From Asterias rubens (lineage: Eukaryota): a DNA stretch of 64,000 nt. Numbering within the stretch: position 1 is the stretch's first letter; every line of letters starts with the position of its first letter. Positions 42,502-54,768 of the stretch are shown here, one piece after another. A model generated the notes under the pieces. The model was given only the letters and a program-made list of their open reading frames with translations, was not told the origin of the DNA and ran no database searches. A program made the translations under genes and the position numbers. Location: NCBI RefSeq assembly GCF_902459465.1, contig NC_047074.1, forward strand, positions 372,001 through 436,000, read 5' to 3'.

Positions 42502-45500
42502 TCAGAGTAAGAGTTTCAAGTCCGGGGCTTGATCGCTGAGTTCCATCCATTCATGAATATGATTCCTATCTCTGCCCATCTGTTTTACTGTCTCATCCAT
42601 ACGTCCATCAAAGAGTCCGAAAAGTCCTCCTGAAGAAAATTCAAAACAAATTCCTTCAATTAAAGATTTGAACACACAAAGACAACACTATTCACTGTTG
42701 AGACACTCTTTTAGAGAGACACCTGTGCATTACACCTCAATATAATTTCTTACCATATTGGTGCCTCCCTCAGGCTTGTGTATACATCTCTTTCTTCCAG
42801 GAGAAATAAGAGACAAATCTAGATGTCTTAGATAGTAACCAGTAGTAACCCCATTCCTCAACTCCTACTCTCCCAGCCTTCTATAGAAACCCCACAAGGG
42901 ACAGCAGTTCTCAAACTAGTCTAAGGGCCATATCACCTGAGGCAATTTACAGGCAACCAGTTCCAGGCAATCTCCGAGAAGAGAATACATTCACATTAGA
43001 CTTTTCTCATATTTTTCCAGGTAATTGCTTGGAAAATTACCCATTGCTGTGCCTCTAAATGGCTGCAAAAGTTGCCTCATATGACAAGGCCTAAAGCCCT
43101 TATGCTGATACCTGAATTGGCAGTTTCGGCTACAGCTATGGCCGTTGCTAAGAGCACCCTGTACTTCAACACATGCTGACACAGCTATCGGCCATACCTC
43201 TAGCCATAGCCGTAGCAGCTATGGCTGTTGCTAAAAGCACCCTGTACTTCAACACATGCTGACACAGCTATCAGCCATAACTCTAGCCATAGCCGTAGCA
43301 GCTATGGCTGTTGCTAAGAGCACCCTGTACTTCAACACATGCTGACACAGCTATCAGCCATAACTCTAGCCATAGCCGTAGCAGCTATGGCTGTTGCTAA
43401 AAGCACCCTGTACTTCAACACATGCTGACACAGCTATCAGCCATAACTCTAGCCATAGCCGTAGCAGCTATGGCTGGTGCTAAGAGCACCTTGTACTTCA
43501 ACACATCCTGACACAGCTATCAGCCATAGCTCTAGCCATAGCCGTAGCTGCCATTTTGGAAAAAGCCCCACAAATTGATTTAACCATCTCACCTGTATGT
43601 ATGAAGAGTATCTTGTTGCCTTTGAATAGTTGTGGTTGTTCCTTTGTTAGCCTGAGTAGATGATGGACGCTCTTACCAGTGTACACAGGTTCAATGATAA
43701 CACCAGTCCTTCTACAAACCTCACCAACAAGATCTAGCAAAAGAAAAACCACAAAATGTCGGAGAAGTTTTAAGATTTAAATGGTTTGGATCATAAGAAA
43801 AACTATAGTAGTAAACTTGCAGGAACAACAATGAATAAAACTACTTTGGGTTGAGAGAAGTGCTGGCTCTGTGAAGGACCGATGTGGTCTCAACGTTTCG
43901 AACAGTATTCTGGAGAGAATTTTGAGTTCATATAGAACTCAATATCAGCAAATATTTGTGGATTTAAAAAATTGTACAAATTAGTTTGAACTCTTATAAC
44001 CGCCGCCTCATCAGAGCTTACTGATCAAAACTTTAGTTGTTGGTTTTTAAAACCAACACTACTCAAAAAGAAATATTCACATGGTGTTACTGCAAACCTC
44101 TTAGCTAATACCATTTATTTAAATGTATAAAAAGACTTCTTTCAATGACTTCATTCTATTCTTGTTTTCTTATTTACCCAGTTCCTCTTGAGTTGACAGT
44201 CCGTAGCCTCTTCCTTTGACTCCATCTATTAAGTGGACAATATCTTCAGACTGCAGGACTTTACCATTGCTATCCTTCACATCGATTTCCCTCAAGACAT
44301 CGTTGATCTGTTTAGAGTGGAACTCTGAGTCATCCGAGACGATGAAGCCATGGACTCTGTAAGAAACATTTTAATTTTCATATTCAGACAAGCATATGAA
44401 GCAGTTTGAGCCTACATTTGCTCTACACTGATTTATGCTAAAGCACCTCAGGTTGGGCATGAACCTACAACCTTCATATTCAACTGTTAATAGGAACTTT
44501 CTCAACACCCTAAGAGTATTTATAAACCTCTCAGCTCAGAGCTACTATCTCAAACCTTTACAACCTCCATTGATACTCCTTGGAGAAGAGAAGCAATTAA
44601 GGCCAGATGCCTTTCTTTATTAGCTGATCTAAAGATAGGTCTGTCATATCACAATGACTGCTGCTGGGTTGCACTTACTTCAGTCTGGAGCCAGTGAGAT
44701 AGTTGGCAAGAGCCAGACCAGCAGTAGAACCACTGCTTCCACATGCAATGGCGATGTCTGTAAACTGGTCTGCAATACCCTAGGTCAAATTAAACCATAA
44801 CCAAAATGATTGATTGTAAACAAGCTGTACGTATGTTGAACGCGTATAGTAGAATATATCTAAACTATTTGATTCAAACTGCCTCTGACTACTGGGCAAG
44901 CTCAGTGGTCTAGTGGGAAGACGCTATTTTAGCATGGTAAATGGCAAAAAAGGATTTCTCAAAAAAGTGAACAAACAACAAATCTGAATAGTTCTTGTAA
45001 AGCTTAAAAAAAGAAAGTGGTTTTGTAATGACTATGACCACAAAAACTAACTAGGCACAGCAAAGTATTGTTGAACAGAACAGTTTACCAGCCAAAATGA
45101 CATTAAGTTTGCATTGTTGGGACTGGTTCCCCACTGCTTTACAAAGAAATGTGTCGAGCAGCATTTTCTGTTTAACATTTTTTATGACATTGGGCCCTAG
45201 TCAGCATTGGTTGTTTGGCTTTGTTTACCGAGTACCCTAATCAAATATATGCTAGGCATGGGTTTATGGGATGTGGGGTAATTGTGGGGTAATTGTGGGG
45301 TTATTGCAGGGTTATTAAAATGAGATCCTCACCTGATCCAGTAGTTCCCTGAATCCCTCCAGATAGCCGTATAAACCTATTGCTGTAGAGCCACCTATTG
45401 GTATTGGGTAGGCACTCTCACCCGTCTCCTCTCTGTATAGAAATCAACATTACTGGGTCACTAAAACTGGATCAATACTAAAAGTGGGTCAGTACTACAA

Positions 45501-48500
45501 CTTTTTCAGTTCTCAAACTTAAGCTTCATCAGTACCATAAACTGGGTCGGTACTAAAACTGGGTCAAAATAAAACTGGGTCAGTACTATAAAATCGGGTC
45601 AGTACTAAAACTGGGTCACTAAGTGGCAAAAGCCATACCGCGTAATTTTTCCTGATTACATAGTTCGAACAAATTAACACACATTTCCGACAACATTAAA
45701 GTTACAAAAAGAGACTGTCGCCACCTAGTGCCCAGAACATTTCACATACAGAAGGAGTTCAAAAGCAATATAGAGTGTTGAAAACTTACTTTATTTTCTG
45801 TACCAGTTGATCCATACGTGGTTTTATATCTGTTGAATATTGAGACTTCTTAGGTAGCAGATAAACATGTGTTCCAATTAGACGGTTCAGGAACATATTA
45901 GCTGTACAAACAACTTCATTTGGATCCTGCATAGAATTGAGTTCAGTAAACATATTTTAATCAATTGGTTGACCATCTTGTTTGTCTTCCATTCAATTAA
46001 ATGTAACTCAAACTGAGGCTGGCAGGAAAAATAAGTCTGGTCCCATTATAAAATGAGAATAAAGACTTTCCCTGTCACCATGAGGGTAGGGAACCAGACC
46101 ACATCGGGATAAAGGTCAACTTAAAAAAGCTGGTACAGTTGATTCAAAGAACGTTCAGTGCATTTGAACTTACTGAGACGGGAGATCTAAGTAGAAGGTA
46201 GGGTTCCAGACCAAGCTGTCTTGTTGCTATGGCAGTAGCTCGACAATGATTTGATTGTGATGATCCACATGTGATGACGGAGGTACAGCCTTGATTTATG
46301 GCGTCGGCAAGGAGGAACTCAAGCTTACGAGCCTGTGTGGAGAATTGTGGAGAATAAATAGAATAACTCTTGGAGGAAAAGAAAATTAAGACACTTAGAT
46401 GAGCCATTCGATGAACTTTGTAATATACCAGTATCAAATGTCTTGAGAAATAGTTGTGAAAAACTCCCCCCCCCCCCCAATTTAAGTTTTACTTTTGTTT
46501 ATTGTGCCAATTCGTAAAGCAAAAGCACAGTGTACCACGGCAATTCCTGTGGGTGCTGTGGGTTATTTTGAGGCCTGCATTCTTGAGTTTTGTTAAGATA
46601 ACTAAATTTCAACATCCATGTTAGAAATCAATTACTGTGACAACAAATCTTTCAGTGTCATCAAATTTCCTCACCTTGTTACCAGAAAGTTCACATCCTG
46701 TCAGGTCATCTCGTTTAATGTGGATTTCAAAATTGGCTGGAACGTTGGGAAGGTACCATCTCTGAATAGGGGTGACTCCATGGATGAGCTATAAATAATA
46801 ATAACAAAAAGAGAATTTGGAAATGTTTGTCAAAGGAAATAATTATTGTTTAACCCAAGAAACAGAATACCATTGAGGCAATCCCCTAATGACCTATTAA
46901 GCCATTTCTTCAAAGTGCAATGACCTTGGGGAGTCATACTTGATATCCTAGATTACTCCACATATTGATGACCGCATTTCATGTAAATAATGTATTGGTA
47001 CACCAGGGCCCTTCAGATTTATAGTTTGTTTCCCAATTATTTTACAATATCAAACTTCAAGTGTTGTTTGAAACTTTGAATAGTGTGGATAATAAGAAGT
47101 AACTATTTGTCAAACTTGCCAGTTACACCCTAATACAACCATGAGTGGGAAGTCTTTATGGCAGCACTTCAAACAGTATACTCTGCTCATCTTCAGCAAA
47201 AAGTATAGTTTGATTAATGTTGACATATTTTACAAAATGACACAGCTGACACTTGATTTTGTGTATTTTCTTCAGCCAGTATTGAAACTTAAGAGATAAT
47301 CACCTTCTCGAGAGACATCTGTTCAACTTGTCAGACAGACTGACCTCCAGTGACCCGACCCTGACACCAAATACCCAGACAGTTATGGCCACACATTATC
47401 ATATTATAATCTATGAACAAAGTGTGGGTCAACAGCTATCACAGTTATTATTTGCACACAGTTTTGTGCACAATTCTGGATATTTTCTCCTTTGTTGAAT
47501 TGACTTAAGTTTCCCTACAGTACTTGATCAGGCTGTGAACATCGTTCTTGCTTGAATGGGCACAGCAATTTCCCTCTGTTAAGGGGCACTTCTATTGGGA
47601 AAATGTAAGCCTGTATTGGAACCTTGCAGATAGAGGGTACCACAGCAAAAGCACAGGACACTTCGGCAATTGAGTGGGTGCCGTGGGTTACTTTGAGACT
47701 GCTTTTATATATTGAGAGAATCTTAGACAAACTTTTCCCTATTTCATCCTAAGTGCTTGACATAAAATGATGACCATCCAGTGGCAATTGCACACAAAAG
47801 GCTATGCACATTGTACATTATATAGGTGGAATTTTAAATTTCTTAAGAATTCCGTGGGATATATTTCCAAGGAATGTGTTTTGTGTGAAAACTAAAAGGA
47901 ATCCACATGCCAGACCAGAGCCAAGCTGAGTATACACAGCTAGCTGCGTCTACATCATAGCTCTGGATAGTACAACCACAAAGCACAGCACAGCATGACC
48001 TGGGCTGGTCTTGCATCATTCAAAAACCTGGCAAGAATTTAACTATAGCTCTGTCTGTTTGATATGGTACTCGGGTACCTGATAATGGCTAGGGTCAAGC
48101 CGTGTCCTTTGTAGTCTAATATTACACACCATGGGTAAATACTCCAATGTCAAACAATCGTCGTGAACAAATAGATACTTTGCACATTGAGAGGTAGGCA
48201 TAACAGGTTTTTTCCTGGTTTATCTTGGTTCCAAGAAAAGAACTAACTGCCTTGTACAAACTACTAATATAAACTTATCTTACTTTTAAAAAGTTGGTGA
48301 TCTTCACTCATTTTTGTAAAGTGTTCCTAAATGAAGGCTTTGTATGGTTTCTGACTGGTACCCCAAACAAGACAAATAGGGAAACCTCCAGTTAGGGGTA
48401 CCCGGTACAATAGCTCACTAGGTAGAGCACTGGAATGTTGATTCAGCAGTCGTAGGTTCAAATCCCACTCTAGTAAATTTGTCTTTGTTCAACCCAAATT

Positions 48501-49032
48501 AGTGAAAATTTACCCAGTTGCAGTTTCCCTTTTATAGTGAGTTATAAGCATTCTATTTTGAGGGTAATAAAAACTTATAAAGACGAAATAAAGCTCTTTC
48601 TGAATAAACTTCACTTACCTTTACTCTGTACTTTGGAATAAGTTGAAGTTGTTTCATCCAATCAGCAGGATGATATTGCAATAAGAAATCTGAGGGTACC
48701 GGACCGTCGCAAGACGCTTCTCCGCCTCCATTCTCTATCAATGCAGTCCGTTTTATCATCTCTGTTTCCATTGCTGGTGAAGGATTCTTAAATGAACTCT
48801 CCTTCCGATGATGAAATCTCGTAACTGTGAATTGGCGACTGCACTGCACCCAGGTACCAAGATTCAAGATATAATGTGAACTACACGTGCCTTTTCTATT
48901 CAATGACTGTTTGCAAATACTCCATGGCCATGAGCTTAATGCATGGCCTGAAGGAATAGATCCTTGACATGGTGCCCAGTAACAACTGAATAGGTTCTTT
49001 ATCTGAACAAATGATACCAGGGATCTAGCCAT
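42502..49032 (-). CDS. D-cysteine desulfhydrase-like PLP enzyme, paralogue A (ACC deaminase/D-Cys desulfhydrase family), about 490 aa with N-terminal extension
   Basis: Exons 48619-49032, 46675-46788, 46174-46332, 45790-45926, 45333-45432, 44679-44779, 44178-44356, 43593-43733, 42502-42629; 1473 nt in frame. Motifs [26 protein letters not shown] (PLP lysine), [47 protein letters not shown]. Start ACCATGG at 49030-49032; second in-frame ATG at 48769-48771. Upstream acceptor at 49215-49216 and a candidate 5' UTR donor at 50233-50237. Confidence 0.93.
43134..43548. repeat. 83-bp minisatellite x5 in the last intron of desulfhydrase A
   Basis: Unit agctatggctgttgctaa(a/g)agcaccctgtacttcaacacatgctgacacagctatcagccataactctagccatagccgtagc starts at 43134, 43217, 43300, 43383 and 43466. 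Confidence 0.95.
45453..45621. repeat. Degenerate 17-bp tandem repeat
   Basis: Recurrent tactaaaactgggtcag in desulfhydrase A intron 4; an 11-bp gtggggtaatt x4 run lies nearby at 45272-45315. Confidence 0.75.
48400..48500 (+). mobile_element. tRNA-headed SINE fragment
   Basis: A-box-like tagctcactaggtagagc and B-box ggttcaaatcc, followed by a shared tail (ctctagt.aattt.tcttt.tt.aa.cc.aa). Related fragments at about 1781-1860, 6455-6535, 10234-10325 (-), 21531-21587 (-), 44896-44940 and 53020-53100. Confidence 0.6.
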
Positions 49033-49393
49033 GGTGTTAAGGTCAAATTCAGGTCAAGTCAAGCCTGGCCTGAGGATGTGTGCATTATTAGTAGACACAG
49101 TGCCAATGAAATTACGCCCCCTGAGAATAGCTAGGGTACAATGTGCAGGTGTGCAGTGAGTCAACATCCGAAGCTAGCTCCATCTGTATAATTTGGACGT
49201 CCATAAAGTGTCACCTAGGAATAAAATGAACACTAACACACATTTTTATATCCTTCCCTAAACTGCAGATGTTACAGCCAGTGTTTGTACTTTGGTTGTG
49301 TCACTGTTTTTTACTAGACTTGAATGAGAAACCAGTTCCCCTTCCTTTTGTCTGGGGGCGAATTTGTCAGGGAGCGAGTTTGCTAGGGGGCCT

Positions 49394-49559
49394 GCAGCCG
49401 ATTTCACGAAACGCTAGGATTAATCCTAACTTGAGTTAGGACGAGTAACCTCTCCTAACTTAGGATGGGTTCAATGCGTCCTAACGAATTTGGATACGGA
49501 TCTGAACCCGTCCTAAGATTAATACTAAGTTAGGAAGAGTTTGTGAAATCGACGGCTGC
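49394..49559. mobile_element. MITE in the 5' UTR intron of desulfhydrase A
   Basis: gcagccgatttcacgaa ... ttgtgaaatcgacggctgc termini, with internal inverted tcctaac/gttagga repeats. Confidence 0.7.
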
Positions 49560-50434
49560 CCCACGTACTCCTAGAACTACGAGGTTTGATCCGCTATCGT
49601 CTCCACGATAGCGGAACGAACCTCATAGTTCCATTCTTCCTCTCAATGATTTTTTTTTTTTGATGCATGCATGCTGCGTCAACAATGATGAGATTGAGAT
49701 TATTCATTGTATAATTTTGTATTATGTTCAACATTTCTTTTTTGTTGTATGTATTGTTTTTTTGTTCTGCGCCTCGGAATAGGGTCTTGTACACTAGATA
49801 GATGGCGCATTATAAATGCATTATTATTATTATTATTATTATACAATCATGGAGGATTTTTACTAATAATACTGCAGTGTAACTGTACTTATTATTATTA
49901 ACAATATAATGCAGTGAGTAGTGTGGTTGGGCTACATGGATTGAGCTAGTAAAATAGTAGTCTAGTAGTAGTAATAGTATGGTGGTATTAAGTGGGCTAT
50001 TGTTAAATATAACAAGTAGAAGTAGTTAAAGTTTATAGTTAAATGTTTAATGGATGAAAGAATGTCGATCAAAATCTCATCAATGCTGGTGCTATGCTGT
50101 GCTACACTGAATGATGTAATGCTATACCTACAGCCCATGTAGAACATGATCAGCTCTGGCCATGCTCCCCTCAGCCTGAAAGTAGATTTGTTGTGATGTG
50201 ACACAGAAACAAATCTACTTCAAAACAAAATAATTACCACCGTTAAACCAGCATAGCGCCCTCATTTTTGTGTTGGTGCAATAATTAAAAACACAGTCCA
50301 CATGTCATGCATGCCAACCATAGAGCTCTATGATGCCAACACGAATAAATACGTCTGAAGATCATTTACTATAATCATGTAGTATGTACATGACTAAGCA
50401 GTGGACTGGTTAAGTTTACGGACGGTACTATCTA

Positions 50435-50628
50435 TAGACTTGTGGACAAGTCGTTAAATCGGCCCCACGCGCTGAGATAGTGGTCTCGCGAGATCACTGC
50501 TCTCGCGCGAACTGATGGCTCCCCCGGCCCCGATTTCGACTCCTCATTAACGAGGAGTCGAAATCGGGGAGCCATCAGTTCGCGCGAGAGCAGTGATCTC
50601 GCGATTTAACGACTTGTCCACAAGTCTC
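50435..50628. mobile_element. Foldback MITE, 194 bp, with a 9-bp TSD (Mutator-like by TSD length)
   Basis: Perfect inverted arms 50436-50461/50602-50627 (26 bp), 50486-50524/50566-50604 (39 bp) and 50528-50545/50552-50569 (18 bp), with a 6-nt loop. Flanked by the direct repeat TACTATCTA at 50426-50434 and 50629-50637. The superfamily assignment is inference. Confidence 0.85.
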
Positions 50629-50682
50629 TACTATCTACTGCATGATGAGAGTTGACTTGATCTTGGAAGGTAGACGTCCAAG

Positions 50683-53600
50683 ATGAGTGCCAATAAACAG
50701 CGATTAAATGAGTCTTTAATCAACTATGACCCGCCTGAATGGGTTAGCAAGCTGGATAATCTACCCAAACATCATGTACAGGTTGGTGTTTTATTTAGTT
50801 TAGATTTTGTGGACCTTAAAACCATTTATTTAATTCGATCATGGAGGTAGAAATTTTGCAAAACTGCTGAATAAACAGATCGGATCTCACTGGGTGTCCT
50901 ATGGACATGGTTGGAAAAATATTTATCGATTTGTTTAGATAGATAGTTTGGCGCAGTTCTGTACCTTTCACCATAGACCATGACCATATGAACACCTGCG
51001 AACCTGCTGCACTAAAAAATTAATATTTATGAATTGATATAAATATGATCAACTTGCATTCACCTTTTTAAATTAAAGGCAGTGGACACTATTGGTAATT
51101 ACTCAAAATAGTTATCATCATAAAACCTTACTTGATTACGAGTAATGTAATGGGGAGAGGTTGATGGCATAAAACATTGTGAGAGACAGCTCCCTCTGAA
51201 GTGACGTAGTTTCCGAGAAAGAAGTAATTTCCCACGAATTTGATTTGAGACCTCAAGTTTAGAATTTGACGTCTCGAAATCAACCATCTAAACGAATACA
51301 ACTTCGTGTGTCAAGGGTGTTTTTTTTCTTCATTGTTATCTCAAATTTTCTCAGAGGTTTATTTGTTATTTTATGCATATGTTTATATACACTAAGTGAG
51401 AAGACTGGTCTTTGACAATTACCATTAGTGTCCAGTGTCTTTAAAATTATAAAGCATACTCTTTCTCATACAAAAGAGTGAAACCTTTGATGTACTGCAA
51501 TTTTTCTTTTTTGATAGCTTGTCCATCCAGACACCCCTATTCATCGATGGTATGTCCCAGGCGTTCCTGAAGATTTTGAGTTGTATATTAAACGCGACGA
51601 TATGACAGGCTCACAGCTTTCAGGAAATAAGGTAAAGCCCACAAAATCACACGGATGCTAGAGAGGCAAAGGTCTCTGCCATGGCTTTCGAAAGTTGCCG
51701 GTTAACTTTGTAAAGATTTTCCAATGGAAGTGCCTTTTCTAAAATGAATAAGGACTTGCCCTTTCAAAGATGAAATCCTATGATTCAGTATGCAGCGAGT
51801 GGTGGGTGTGGCCTTTATTTAACTTAAACTCAAATTGACGTTTTAGAGGTGTGTTGATGTAAACTTTTCCCATGATGCAGTTGCAAAAAAATGCTGAAGA
51901 ATTGCTTAATTGAGGGGGAATGTGAGGAGCCAAGTTATTGTTGAAAAGAAATAAAGATTTTGTTCTAAACTTTGAAAACCAAATTGTGGAGTTTAAAGTT
52001 ATACTTAAATTTTCAATCAGGTACGGAAACTGGAGTTCTTGCTCGCTGATGCCATCTCAAAAGGATGTTCAACGATCATTACTTGTGGTGGTATTCAATC
52101 AAACCACAGCAGAGCTACAACCATCTCAGGTCATCAACTTGGACTCAAAACTCATCTTCTTCTCAAGAGTACAGAACTGGTACGTGTCAAGCAAGAATAC
52201 AAATAAGTAGGTTTTGAAACTTTCATGGTGCGAGTATAATTAGGTGAGATTTGTGGTAGCACAATGTGTAAATCTCTTCTGAGTTGGTTCTGAAAAGAAT
52301 CGGTGGTTGACAGCTCAATGTTATGATGAGTATGCTCTGATCGTCTTCATCATCCTGGCTTGCCTGTGTCAATGTGTCTTTTTTTTTTCCAGGACCCAGA
52401 GAAGGCAACTTGCAAAGGGAATGTCTTATTGGATCGTCTTGTAGGAACCCACATTCATCTGATTCCTGGAGATGCAGTTTATAATGAAGACATCCATCAA
52501 AGGATGGAAAACTTCAAGAAGAAAATTAGGTAAAACAAACAAAGTGTATTATCTGATTTGGTCTGGGGAATTGTGAAAAAAACCCAGGCTGTATCCATTG
52601 ATATCCTCCTTCTTTTTCAAGCCTGGAAACTCAGCAAACTTACCCCCCCCCCTCCCATCCTTCTCATCTCCTCGCCCCCTTTGCAGAAATGTTTGCAAGA
52701 AAATAGTACACAAACTCATACTTTCAGGGTTTGCCCATTCAGTGACTGGTCAAAGGACCAGTTCTTAGCCTTCCATCTTACTAGTCCGTCACCTTTTGCA
52801 CTGGTTCAAAGCCAGCAGACAACTGTTAATCTCAAACAGTTGTTTGTATTTTCCTCCAGTGAAGAGAAAGGTGAGAAGGCATATTCCATTCCATGTGGAG
52901 GGACCAACTCAATTGGACTCTTTGGCTACGTTCAAACATTCCAAGAGCTCCTTAAACAGGTACTAGCTTTATTTAAACTGTCTCTAGCCAACGGGCAATC
53001 TCAGTGGTATATGTTGTAAGATACTGCTCTAGAATTGCAAAGGTTGTTGTTTGAATCCCACTTAAGTAATATACCTGTGATTATTTTGTAGAACTCAGGA
53101 CATCTGTGTATGGTAAAATCCAAATGATAAGGTACTAGCTTGATTTAACGGCGCATGGTTTGGGCAAAATATGTGATCGTCTGAGTTAATGGGAATTTAA
53201 TTTATTTTGTAATTACGAAAAACTTGTTAAAGTTACTTCCTTTTTTTTATAGAAAGTCCCGGATAATTTCACAGACATTGCTGTTGCAGTTGGTAGTGGA
53301 GGAACGATTGGAGGACTAAGCATGTCTAACTATCTCAGCAACTCTCATCTTAGGTAAATTTTTGTAAAGAAGAAGCATGCAACCTTTTAGCTCATCAGGG
53401 CCCAATTTCATAGCTCTGCTTACCGCCGATTTCTACATTTGCAGGGCAAGCATTGAATTCTGCGCTCACTGTGTAAGTGAAATTGCCTTGTAACGTGGAA
53501 GATGCACTTACACAAGCAAACATTTCCTGATAACTTGTGAAATATGATGAGCAGAGTCATAAAACTAGTCCCAGGAGATAATTTGTTTTCTTGAATACTA

Positions 53601-54768
53601 CTAGCATAGAACACTGAAAACTCTGTACAATGATTGGTGGGCATCTTTTTGTTCTCTTATGGGGAATAAAAAGTTGCAAATCTGAGATATTTTGTATAAT
53701 CCAGAGGGAGAATCAATCAAAAACATCACTTGATATCTGTCCATCCTCTTTGTTTTCTTTTTGTTTTGTTTGCAGAATTCATGGGATGCTTGTTGGTGAC
53801 ACTGGGGAGTATTTCCACTCTGAGATAAACAAAGCCTTAGATGGTTTGAACTGGAGTCAGAAACACCCTGGGGTACAGTCTCAAGATATGTGTGAGATGT
53901 ATGAAGAGGCACAGGGGCGGGGTTATGCACTCTCATCACCAGATGAATTAGGTAAGTAGCTAGAGTACTTCAAGATACCCATGGCCCGCCCCCACCCACT
54001 CCTCAAATATTCAACAACCACTGGACATTTTAGCTCTATCTAACTGACCAGAAATAATTAACACCAGAAAAAGTTGTTTTGTTCTTAAGTTTGTGTTGTG
54101 CTGACCAGTTATGATGTAGAGGTTTCGACTAGAAATCTTATTCCAAAATATTAAAGAAAACTTTCAAATATGGACAACTGATGCCTACACACCAGACTTC
54201 AAGACTGCAAATTTCAATTTACTGGATCACAATATTCTAAAGCTGATTGGTGTAAATGGTTAGCATGGTAACCAACAGTCAGAATGGAATTGGGTTACGG
54301 CACTGTATGTTTGTAAGCACAGGCAAGGGTTTAGGTATTCTGTTCACCATTATAGTTGACTGATTGAATAAATTTCCTTTGTTTGTACAGAGTTTATTAG
54401 TGCTGTTGCCGAGGCAACAGGCATCCTCCTCGATCCTGTATACACTGGGAAAGCAGCGTTTCACCTGATCAAAATGATGAAAGAAAAACCAGAATGCTTC
54501 AAGGGAAAGAAAGTTCTTTTCATCCATACAGGTAAACAACTTGGACAAATATAATACAACAGCTAAGCAAAACATTCTAAGCATCAAATGGTATGCGACA
54601 TAATTGGTATGCAACATAAATGATTGAATGCTAAATATTTGATTTATTTCAGGTGGAATGTTTGCTTTGTTTGACGGACGGATGGATGACATGGTCAGAA
54701 TGAAAGGTTCTCTCACAAACAGAATCGATGCATGGATTGACGTTGATAAAGTTCCAGAAATCAACTAA
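50683..54768 (+). CDS. D-cysteine desulfhydrase-like PLP enzyme, paralogue B, about 380 aa
   Basis: Exons 50683-50781, 51518-51631, 52021-52179, 52393-52529, 52860-52959, 53253-53353, 53776-53951, 54391-54531, 54653-54768; 1143 nt in frame. Motifs [73 protein letters not shown]. Intron positions and phases are identical to paralogue A. AATAAA at 55259. Confidence 0.95.
51077..51440. mobile_element. Same TTAA-TSD family, in intron 1 of desulfhydrase B
   Basis: TTAA|AGGCAGTGGACACTATTGGTAATT...AATTACCATTAGTGTCCAGTGTCT|TTAA; internal sequence is homologous to 16354-16828. Confidence 0.85.

Follow-up and report, generated by a model that had tools for sequence, protein, structure and literature searches.

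The genome of the sea star Asterias rubens carries, in the 64,000-nucleotide stretch analysed here (contig NC_047074.1, positions 372,001 to 436,000 of the forward strand, assembly GCF_902459465.1; hereafter the window, numbered from its first letter), two complete genes of nine coding exons each that are arranged head-to-head and are referred to below as A (minus strand) and B (plus strand). Their products are fold-type II pyridoxal phosphate (PLP) enzymes of the eukaryotic D-cysteine desulfhydrase (DCD) branch of the D-cysteine desulfhydrase/ACC deaminase family (ACC, 1-aminocyclopropane-1-carboxylate). The main activity predicted for both from sequence, to which a probability of about 0.6 is assigned, is the cleavage of D-cysteine to H2S, pyruvate and ammonia. 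This is the best-supported reaction because of the kinship of the two proteins to plant DCD and the presence in both of intact equivalents of Gln77, Ser78 and Tyr287 of the Salmonella enzyme DcyD, whose numbering is used throughout for active-site residues unless ACC deaminases are discussed. A and B are paralogues with identical catalytic residues, so that they most likely represent two isozymes of a single D-specific beta-eliminase and not enzymes of consecutive steps, and the two-enzyme route that a preliminary description of the locus had proposed was therefore not borne out.

Models of both genes were built from the window sequence by six-frame reading and inspection of splice sites (Table 1). 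All 16 introns are bounded by GT..AG, the intron phases are the same in the two genes, and coding exons 2 to 8 agree in size except for exon 7 (179 nt in A versus 176 nt in B), with last exons of 128 and 116 nt, respectively. Gene B encodes a protein of 380 amino acids without an N-terminal extension, from an ATG at 50683 to a stop at 54768, and gene A a protein of 403 amino acids if read from the ATG at 48771 or of 490 if read from an in-frame ATG at 49032. The two proteins are identical at 184 of 380 positions (48%), the exon-wise figures being 25/38 for exon 2 and 23/46 for exon 8, and both contain the motifs PVYTGK and HTGG. The divergent layout, shared intron phases, exon sizes, exon identities and motifs had all been noted in the preliminary description and were all reproduced.

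The gene B protein is 100% identical over its 380 amino acids to RefSeq entry XP_033638263.1, which bears the name bifunctional D-cysteine desulfhydrase/1-aminocyclopropane-1-carboxylate deaminase, and 99.2% identical to a protein of Asterias amurensis. For the gene A protein, identity to A. amurensis isoform X1 (P0335, 488 amino acids) is 98.5%, and the start of that isoform corresponds to the upstream ATG at 49032. Both genes are expressed, as seen from RNA-seq reads and transcript contigs mapped to positions 46170-52169 of the window. For gene B, spliced reads matched introns 1 and 2 exactly (30 and 16 reads, respectively), and contigs of 1817 and 2270 nt joined exons 1, 2 and 3. For gene A, reads were found over exons 1, 2 and 3, together with a contig that runs from exon 1 up to 49212 and thus spans the upstream ATG.

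Family membership was examined with profile and structure searches, in which gene A was scored on profiles through its A. amurensis orthologue P0335. The Pfam scan returned PALP (PF00291) as the sole match (110.7 bits for B and 96.2 bits for P0335; cut-off 35). The best NCBIfam model for A, B and a third copy found in A. amurensis (P0336, see below) was TIGR01275, the D-cysteine desulfhydrase family, on which B scored 310.8 bits, above the cut-off of 289.4, and A and P0336 scored 268.2 and 261 bits, below it; other animal homologues gave 271 to 310 bits. Among solved structures, the best matches of both proteins were 1J0A, 7YSK and 4D8T, with E values of 1e-40 to 1e-52, whereas the ACC deaminases 1RQX and 1F2D were matched far more weakly (1e-22 to 1e-29). 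The family assignment made earlier from the sequence alone was thereby upheld.

Active-site residues were counted both on the alignments to these structures and after aligning the proteins with E. coli DcyD in MAFFT. All ten active-site residues discussed for Salmonella DcyD, namely Asn50, Lys51, Gln77, Ser78, Asn79, His80, Tyr261, Tyr287, Thr288 and Thr315, are present in both A and B, the PLP-binding lysine being Lys71 in B and Lys89 in A. In the Salmonella enzyme, Tyr287 is the base that takes the alpha proton from D-substrates, the activity on D-cysteine is determined by Gln77 and Ser78, and Thr315 is the partner of the pyridine nitrogen (PMC3344862). Copy A of A. amurensis reads FIHSGG where the window reads FIHTGG, a Thr-to-Ser exchange at residue 315, which hydrogen-bonds the pyridine nitrogen of PLP. 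Gln77 is not universal in animals, as seen in the sequences VRSNH of Strongylocentrotus purpuratus (P0263) and IYSNH of Nematostella (P0207); 34 of the 198 homologues collected lack Gln at this position, and substrate preference may differ between animal lineages.

Among assayed enzymes, the DCDs of plants (At1g48420 of Arabidopsis and the orthologues of tomato, pepper and potato, annotated as 'D-cysteine desulfhydrase 1, mitochondrial') are the closest relatives; they belong to the same eukaryotic branch and are 40-45% identical to the sea-star proteins. Plant and sea-star proteins have in common the motifs YS/TGK, HTGG and QSNH, a similar length and the same pattern of NCBIfam scores; the plant enzymes carry an N-terminal presequence. 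They differ in that plant DCDs reach 416-418 bits on TIGR01275, against 268-311 bits for the sea-star proteins, and in that the plant gene is not part of a head-to-head pair. The Arabidopsis enzyme cleaves D-cysteine in vitro, its activity on ACC being disputed (PMC4048297). Bacterial DcyD (E. coli and Salmonella, 4D8T) shares the fold-type II fold and, as described above, the ten active-site residues, yet it is only about 33% identical to A and B, has Ala instead of Asp at position 323, and is encoded in a cystine-transporter operon, unlike the sea-star pair.

From the conserved residues and the published work on Salmonella DcyD, the following mechanism may be proposed for A and B. PLP would be held as a Schiff base on the active-site lysine and would form an external aldimine with a D-amino acid bearing a leaving group on its beta carbon. 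The phenolate of the PVYTGK tyrosine, tuned by the equivalent of Tyr261, would then take the alpha proton, and the beta substituent would leave, with release of an aminoacrylate that decays to pyruvate and ammonia. The HTGG threonine would hydrogen-bond the pyridine nitrogen. The substrate, the compartment and the physiological role given here for A and B, including any part in H2S signalling, are inferred, whereas gene structures, expression, family, residues, age bracket and purifying selection were established from the data.

The age of the pair was addressed through synteny and phylogeny. The same head-to-head layout, with A on the minus and B on the plus strand, is found in A. amurensis, Patiria miniata and Acanthaster planci, and in these three sea stars B is followed downstream by a CWC15-like gene on the opposite strand and then by a Dicty_CAR-type (cAMP-receptor-like) G protein-coupled receptor gene. 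In a maximum-likelihood tree of 61 proteins, asteroid A and asteroid B copies each formed a clade with support of 100/100, both lying within a non-crinoid echinoderm clade (100/99). Given these two clades and the presence of the same pair in four species, the duplication predates crown sea stars. The A clade clustered with some copies of the brittle star Amphiura, at weak support (90/74), and an approximately unbiased (AU) test did not reject a duplication restricted to the sea-star stem (p = 0.33), so an origin before the split of asteroids and ophiuroids was dropped and the claim was limited to a bracket: the duplication postdates the crinoid split and predates that between forcipulatid and valvatid sea stars. 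The latter split dates to roughly 200 million years ago. The pair is best explained by an inverted duplication in tandem that preceded the radiation of the living sea stars.

Both copies are clearly under purifying selection. The ratio of nonsynonymous to synonymous substitution rates (dN/dS) between A. rubens and A. amurensis was 0.14-0.18 for the core of A and 0.08-0.11 for B; between Patiria and Acanthaster, for which codons were mapped with the longest isoform and exact peptide matching, it was 0.08 for the core of A and 0.09-0.125 for B. Neither a silent copy nor a copy with dN/dS near 1 was found, RNA being present on both genes, and the earlier conclusion that the duplication is old and that both copies are kept agrees with the separate clades, the syntenic pair and these ratios. 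B lies on a longer branch of the tree than A, and identity between Asterias and valvatid sea stars is 67% for B and 75% for A. The third A-like copy of A. amurensis, P0336, has 391 amino acids, is 84% identical to gene A, lacks the long leader and lies on another contig (30.8 Mb); this duplicate is younger and arose within the lineage of Asterias.

A comparison of the two clades revealed 45 positions fixed differently between them, few of which could be polarised, and those that could were conservative. The changes derived in A that fall in or near active-site segments are Val52Ala, Gly75Ser, Ile76Ser/Thr, a Thr-to-Ser exchange in the phosphate loop and Ala291Ser, and nothing among these residues suggests new chemistry. 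The clearest difference between the copies is the N-terminus. The extension of gene A comprises 87 codons and begins in a strong Kozak context (aacaccATGG); it contains no Asp or Glu in its first 76 amino acids, is rich in Ser, Arg and Lys, and has a net charge of +5 over its first 60 amino acids. In Patiria and Acanthaster, the annotation includes long A isoforms (517 and 528 amino acids, respectively) whose leaders are likewise basic and free of acidic residues, alongside short isoforms of about 405 amino acids. B of Asterias and Patiria starts directly at the conserved core and contains acidic residues from its very beginning. The dN/dS of the A extension is 0.21-0.25 between the two Asterias species. 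The leader of copy A is a candidate mitochondrial presequence. As it is acid-free and rich in Ser, Arg and Lys, copy A probably enters mitochondria (or is dually located), with copy B probably cytosolic, in the manner of the mitochondrial plant DCD, and such a division of labour is the most likely reason why both copies have been kept.

A number of observations weigh against D-cysteine cleavage by a mitochondrial and a cytosolic isozyme. The substrate is assigned through homology at 33-45% identity, and neither A nor B reached the cut-off of any NCBIfam equivalog model: the DcyD equivalogs NF003029/30/32 gave the sea-star proteins 143-166 bits against cut-offs of 429-610 (E. coli DcyD, as a control, scored 736, 621 and 505 bits), and the CuyA model NF052482 gave 211-231 bits against a cut-off of 450. 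D- and L-serine, but not D-cysteine, are substrates of the best-scoring solved homologue, PH0054 (PMC4048297). At position 323, which shapes the conformation of Gln77 (PMC3344862), both sea-star proteins and the plant enzymes have Asp, compared with Ala in Salmonella DcyD and His in PH0054. With regard to compartment, the presequence call is one of composition; the A extension evolves fast between Patiria and Acanthaster (dN/dS 0.64-0.84); a BLAST comparison of the A extension with the extensions of these two genera was not significant, and no homology is therefore claimed for the leaders; and one B isoform of Acanthaster is annotated with a basic extension too.

Among the alternatives, the one that survives best, although unlikely, is that the real task of the two enzymes is to clear D-amino acids other than D-cysteine that carry a leaving group on the beta carbon, for example D-serine, O-acyl-D-serine or halogenated D-alanines of dietary or microbial origin, with D-cysteine cleavage as a side activity. 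PH0054 of Pyrococcus horikoshii (PhAHP, 1J0A), a homologue of ACC deaminase that deaminates D- and L-serine (PMC4048297), was the best solved match of A and B (161-182 bits) and is identical to them in the segments DPVYTGKA and IHTGG. Salmonella DcyD itself degrades beta-chloro-D-alanine efficiently and D-serine poorly (PMC3344862), the family has been called promiscuous (PMC4048297), and D-amino acids and racemases have been reported in invertebrates, including echinoderms (PMC12414876). However, the pocket of PH0054 differs from that of Salmonella DcyD only by a His in place of Gln77 (His80 of PhAHP, packed on His316, the latter in place of the sea-star Asp323), and both A and B have Gln. 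A Q77H mutant of Salmonella DcyD loses its activity on D-cysteine (PMC3344862), which implies that the retained Gln/Ser pair favours D-cysteine as the substrate.

Slightly less probable again is the possibility that A, B or both are sulfo-lyases that act on D-cysteate, or a related beta-sulfonated D-amino acid, in the manner of bacterial CuyA and release sulfite instead of sulfide; they would then serve the breakdown of marine sulfonates, for example of cysteate derived from D-cysteinolate, with a mitochondrial A feeding sulfite oxidase. CuyA is a member of the same family with about 30-35% identity to A and B, is specific for D-cysteate, and uses the same catalytic residues and a D-specific mechanism with a tyrosine base (PMC11193023). 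D-cysteinolic acid is listed as having been isolated from a starfish (reference 10 of PMC12814064). At position 76, beside Gln77, the A clade has a hydroxyl residue (Ser/Thr) like the Thr of CuyA, whereas DcyD, copy B and most eukaryotic homologues have Ile or Val; Thr76 is, however, also present in 7YSK, which was deposited as a D-cysteine desulfhydrase. The CuyA profile was the second-best NCBIfam match of the sea-star proteins (211-231 bits, versus 146-166 bits on the DcyD equivalogs). This order was dropped as evidence for a sulfo-lyase because plant DCDs, whose Arabidopsis member is active on D-cysteine in vitro, show the same order. The CuyA cut-off also remains far off, while three real, plasmid-borne CuyAs from cuyA-cuyB-hpsN clusters, adjoining racemase and hisD-like genes, scored 527-538 bits. 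Moreover, CuyA reads YSAKG where the sea-star proteins read YTGKS/A, as in DcyD, and cuyA genes adjoin those for cysteate racemase and an HpsN-like dehydrogenase, whereas no racemase neighbour was present at the locus in the four sea stars and no HpsN-like partner was seen there, no search having been aimed at either. As a separate observation on the bacterial genes, plasmids of Ruegeria sp. and Leisingera were seen to carry cuyA-racemase-hisD-like clusters, with an additional aminotransferase in Leisingera, which match the published cluster for D-cysteinolate degradation and in which 'D-cysteine desulfhydrase' is the only annotation given to cuyA.

The latter part of the RefSeq name, and the report by one group that the Arabidopsis homologue degrades ACC (PMC4048297), would instead make A and B true ACC deaminases, a function that is effectively excluded on the sequence evidence. 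The AcdS enzymes (Pseudomonas UW4/ACP and Williopsis saturnus; 1RQX and 1F2D) share with A and B the superfamily fold, the PLP-binding Lys51, Ser78 and the catalytic Tyr. In ACC deaminases, however, position 315 is Leu and position 80 is Gln, and Glu295 makes the pyridine contact (PMC3344862). Aligned to 1RQX, which reads YEGK, HLGG and SNQ, the sea-star copies read YTGK, H(T/S)GG and SNH, so that Glu295, Leu322 and Gln80 of the ACC deaminases are replaced in A and B by Thr, Thr and His, and neither Glu nor Leu was found at the key sites in any of the 198 eukaryotic homologues collected. The E295S/L322T mutant of Pseudomonas ACC deaminase loses its activity on ACC (PMC4048297), and the ACC deaminase model TIGR01274 gave the sea-star proteins 122-128 bits against a cut-off of 392. 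The argument from the two threonines, which had been put forward on first reading, thus held up against alignments, structure and mutants. That one copy is a decaying or functionless duplicate, as the longer branch and lower identity of B might suggest, is the least probable of all, since both reading frames are intact with canonical splice sites, transcripts of both genes exist and those of B are spliced correctly, two independent species pairs give dN/dS values of 0.08-0.18, and all catalytic residues are kept, with orthologues of each copy in four species.

A broader picture may be sketched that is speculative and, taken as a whole, doubtful. Sea stars, and many marine invertebrates, would have a one-step stereospecific route from D-cysteine to H2S that was lost in vertebrates, which use D-amino acid oxidase (DAO) and 3-mercaptopyruvate sulfurtransferase (3MST) instead, and that was split in asteroids into a mitochondrial A and a cytosolic B. 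In another version of this picture, A would have shifted to sulfonates of the D-cysteate type, linked to the D-cysteinolic acid of starfish, and would represent in an animal a sulfo-lyase so far seen only in bacteria.

The family is widespread in animals. Homologues from cnidarians, sponges, molluscs, annelids, nemerteans, echinoderms, hemichordates, amphioxus and tunicates were among the matches listed, and no vertebrate, arthropod or nematode name occurred in the three lists of the best 120 matches, an absence that is consistent with loss but is not proof of it. Adjacent family pairs were also found in molluscs, namely in Mytilus californianus (P0232/P0255; LOC127737078/77) and Batillaria (P0223/P0285); several copies share one contig in the case of P0191/P0244/P0269, of which at least P0269 is from Haliotis rubra, and Amphiura has six family copies. 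Tandem duplication is thus a general tendency in this family, of which the sea-star pair is one instance. The genomic novelty claimed in the preliminary description was overstated, as both genes are already annotated under this name in RefSeq and homologues, often in tandem, are common among animals. Its statement that the animal orthologues are biochemically uncharacterised stands within the literature searched, where no biochemical study of such an orthologue was found; a 2025 review of D-amino acids lists D-cysteine desulfhydrase only among plant enzymes and gives DAO/3MST for mammals (PMC12414876). The gap is thus biochemical and not genomic: family, mechanism and gene names are already in public databases, and this is no new kind of system. 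The new facts are modest: the head-to-head architecture is conserved across sea stars, the duplication can be bracketed in age, both copies are strongly constrained, and they differ at the N-terminus.

Several repeats and other elements were observed at the locus. Intron 8 of gene A contains an 83-bp minisatellite in five copies with 96% matching (43133-43548), which yields repeated translations resembling open reading frames outside the coding sequence of gene A. In intron 1 of gene A, an Rfam tRNA match lies at 48406-48476 on the plus strand (39.1 bits, which exceeds the gathering score), and RNA depth is raised in its vicinity; no tRNA was called there by ARAGORN, and the match may be the head of a tRNA-derived short interspersed nuclear element. 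Just upstream of the gene B ATG lies an insertion of about 196 bp (around 50435-50630) that the A. amurensis genome lacks; transcripts of that species join 50434 directly to 50645 with ends that are not GT/AG, so the segment is an indel and not an intron. The A. amurensis intergenic region holds about 1.3 kb of extra sequence of its own. Intron 1 of gene B contains an element (51073-51444) with 28-nt terminal inverted repeats that are 89% complementary; the extreme RNA-seq depth over it and the abundance of reads with chimeric or loose ends indicate a multi-copy, transcribed repeat resembling a miniature inverted-repeat transposable element. A second repeat with very deep RNA coverage lies between the genes at about 49370-49569.

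Table 1. Coordinates of genes A and B and of the region between them, in window positions.
Feature	Position	Strand	Basis
Gene A transcription unit as far as seen	42502..49212	-	Model; RNA contig piece 48642-49212
Gene A candidate N-terminal extension, 87 codons from ATG 49032	48772..49032	-	Sequence, RNA cover
Gene A coding exon 1, 153 nt from ATG 48771	48619..48771	-	Model
Gene A exon 2, 114 nt; last codon is the PLP-binding Lys, 46677-46675 (SGNK)	46675..46788	-	Model
Gene A exon 3, 159 nt; QSNH, equivalents of Gln77/Ser78/Asn79/His80; Ser/Asn/His codons 46254-46246	46174..46332	-	Model
Gene A exon 4, 137 nt	45790..45926	-	Model
Gene A exon 5, 100 nt	45333..45432	-	Model
Gene A exon 6, 101 nt; PLP-phosphate loop GSSGS	44679..44779	-	Model
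Gene A exon 7, 179 nt; Tyr261 equivalent in GRGYG	44178..44356	-	Model
Gene A exon 8, 141 nt; PVYTGK Tyr 43683-43681, Thr 43680-43678; HTGG Thr 43596-43594	43593..43733	-	Model
Gene A exon 9, 128 nt with stop; stop at 42502	42502..42629	-	Model
Divergent intergenic/5' untranslated region between A and B	49213..50682	.	Between models; holds the insertion of about 196 bp
Gene B coding span, 380 amino acids	50683..54768	+	Equals XP_033638263.1; RNA contigs
Gene B exon 1, 99 nt	50683..50781	+	Model; splice joint 50779/51516, 30 reads
Gene B exon 2, 114 nt; PLP Lys71 codon 51629-51631	51518..51631	+	Model; splice joint 51629/52019, 16 reads
Gene B exon 3, 159 nt; IQSNH, Ser98/Asn99/His100 codons 52099-52107	52021..52179	+	Model
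Gene B exon 4, 137 nt	52393..52529	+	Model
Gene B exon 5, 100 nt	52860..52959	+	Model
Gene B exon 6, 101 nt; PLP-phosphate loop GSGGT	53253..53353	+	Model
Gene B exon 7, 176 nt	53776..53951	+	Model
Gene B exon 8, 141 nt; PVYTGK Tyr313 54441-54443, Thr314 54444-54446; HTGG Thr342 54528-54530	54391..54531	+	Model
Gene B exon 9, 116 nt with stop	54653..54768	+	Model

If D-cysteine is indeed cleaved by these enzymes, marine invertebrates would make H2S from D-cysteine in one step, like plants and bacteria, and the mammalian type of route, in which two enzymes are divided between peroxisome and mitochondrion, would not be needed in them. Since echinoderms, hemichordates, amphioxus and tunicates all have the gene, this would bear on the evolution of sulfide signalling and of D-amino-acid handling in deuterostomes, and the conserved sea-star pair would offer a clean natural experiment in the partitioning of isozymes.

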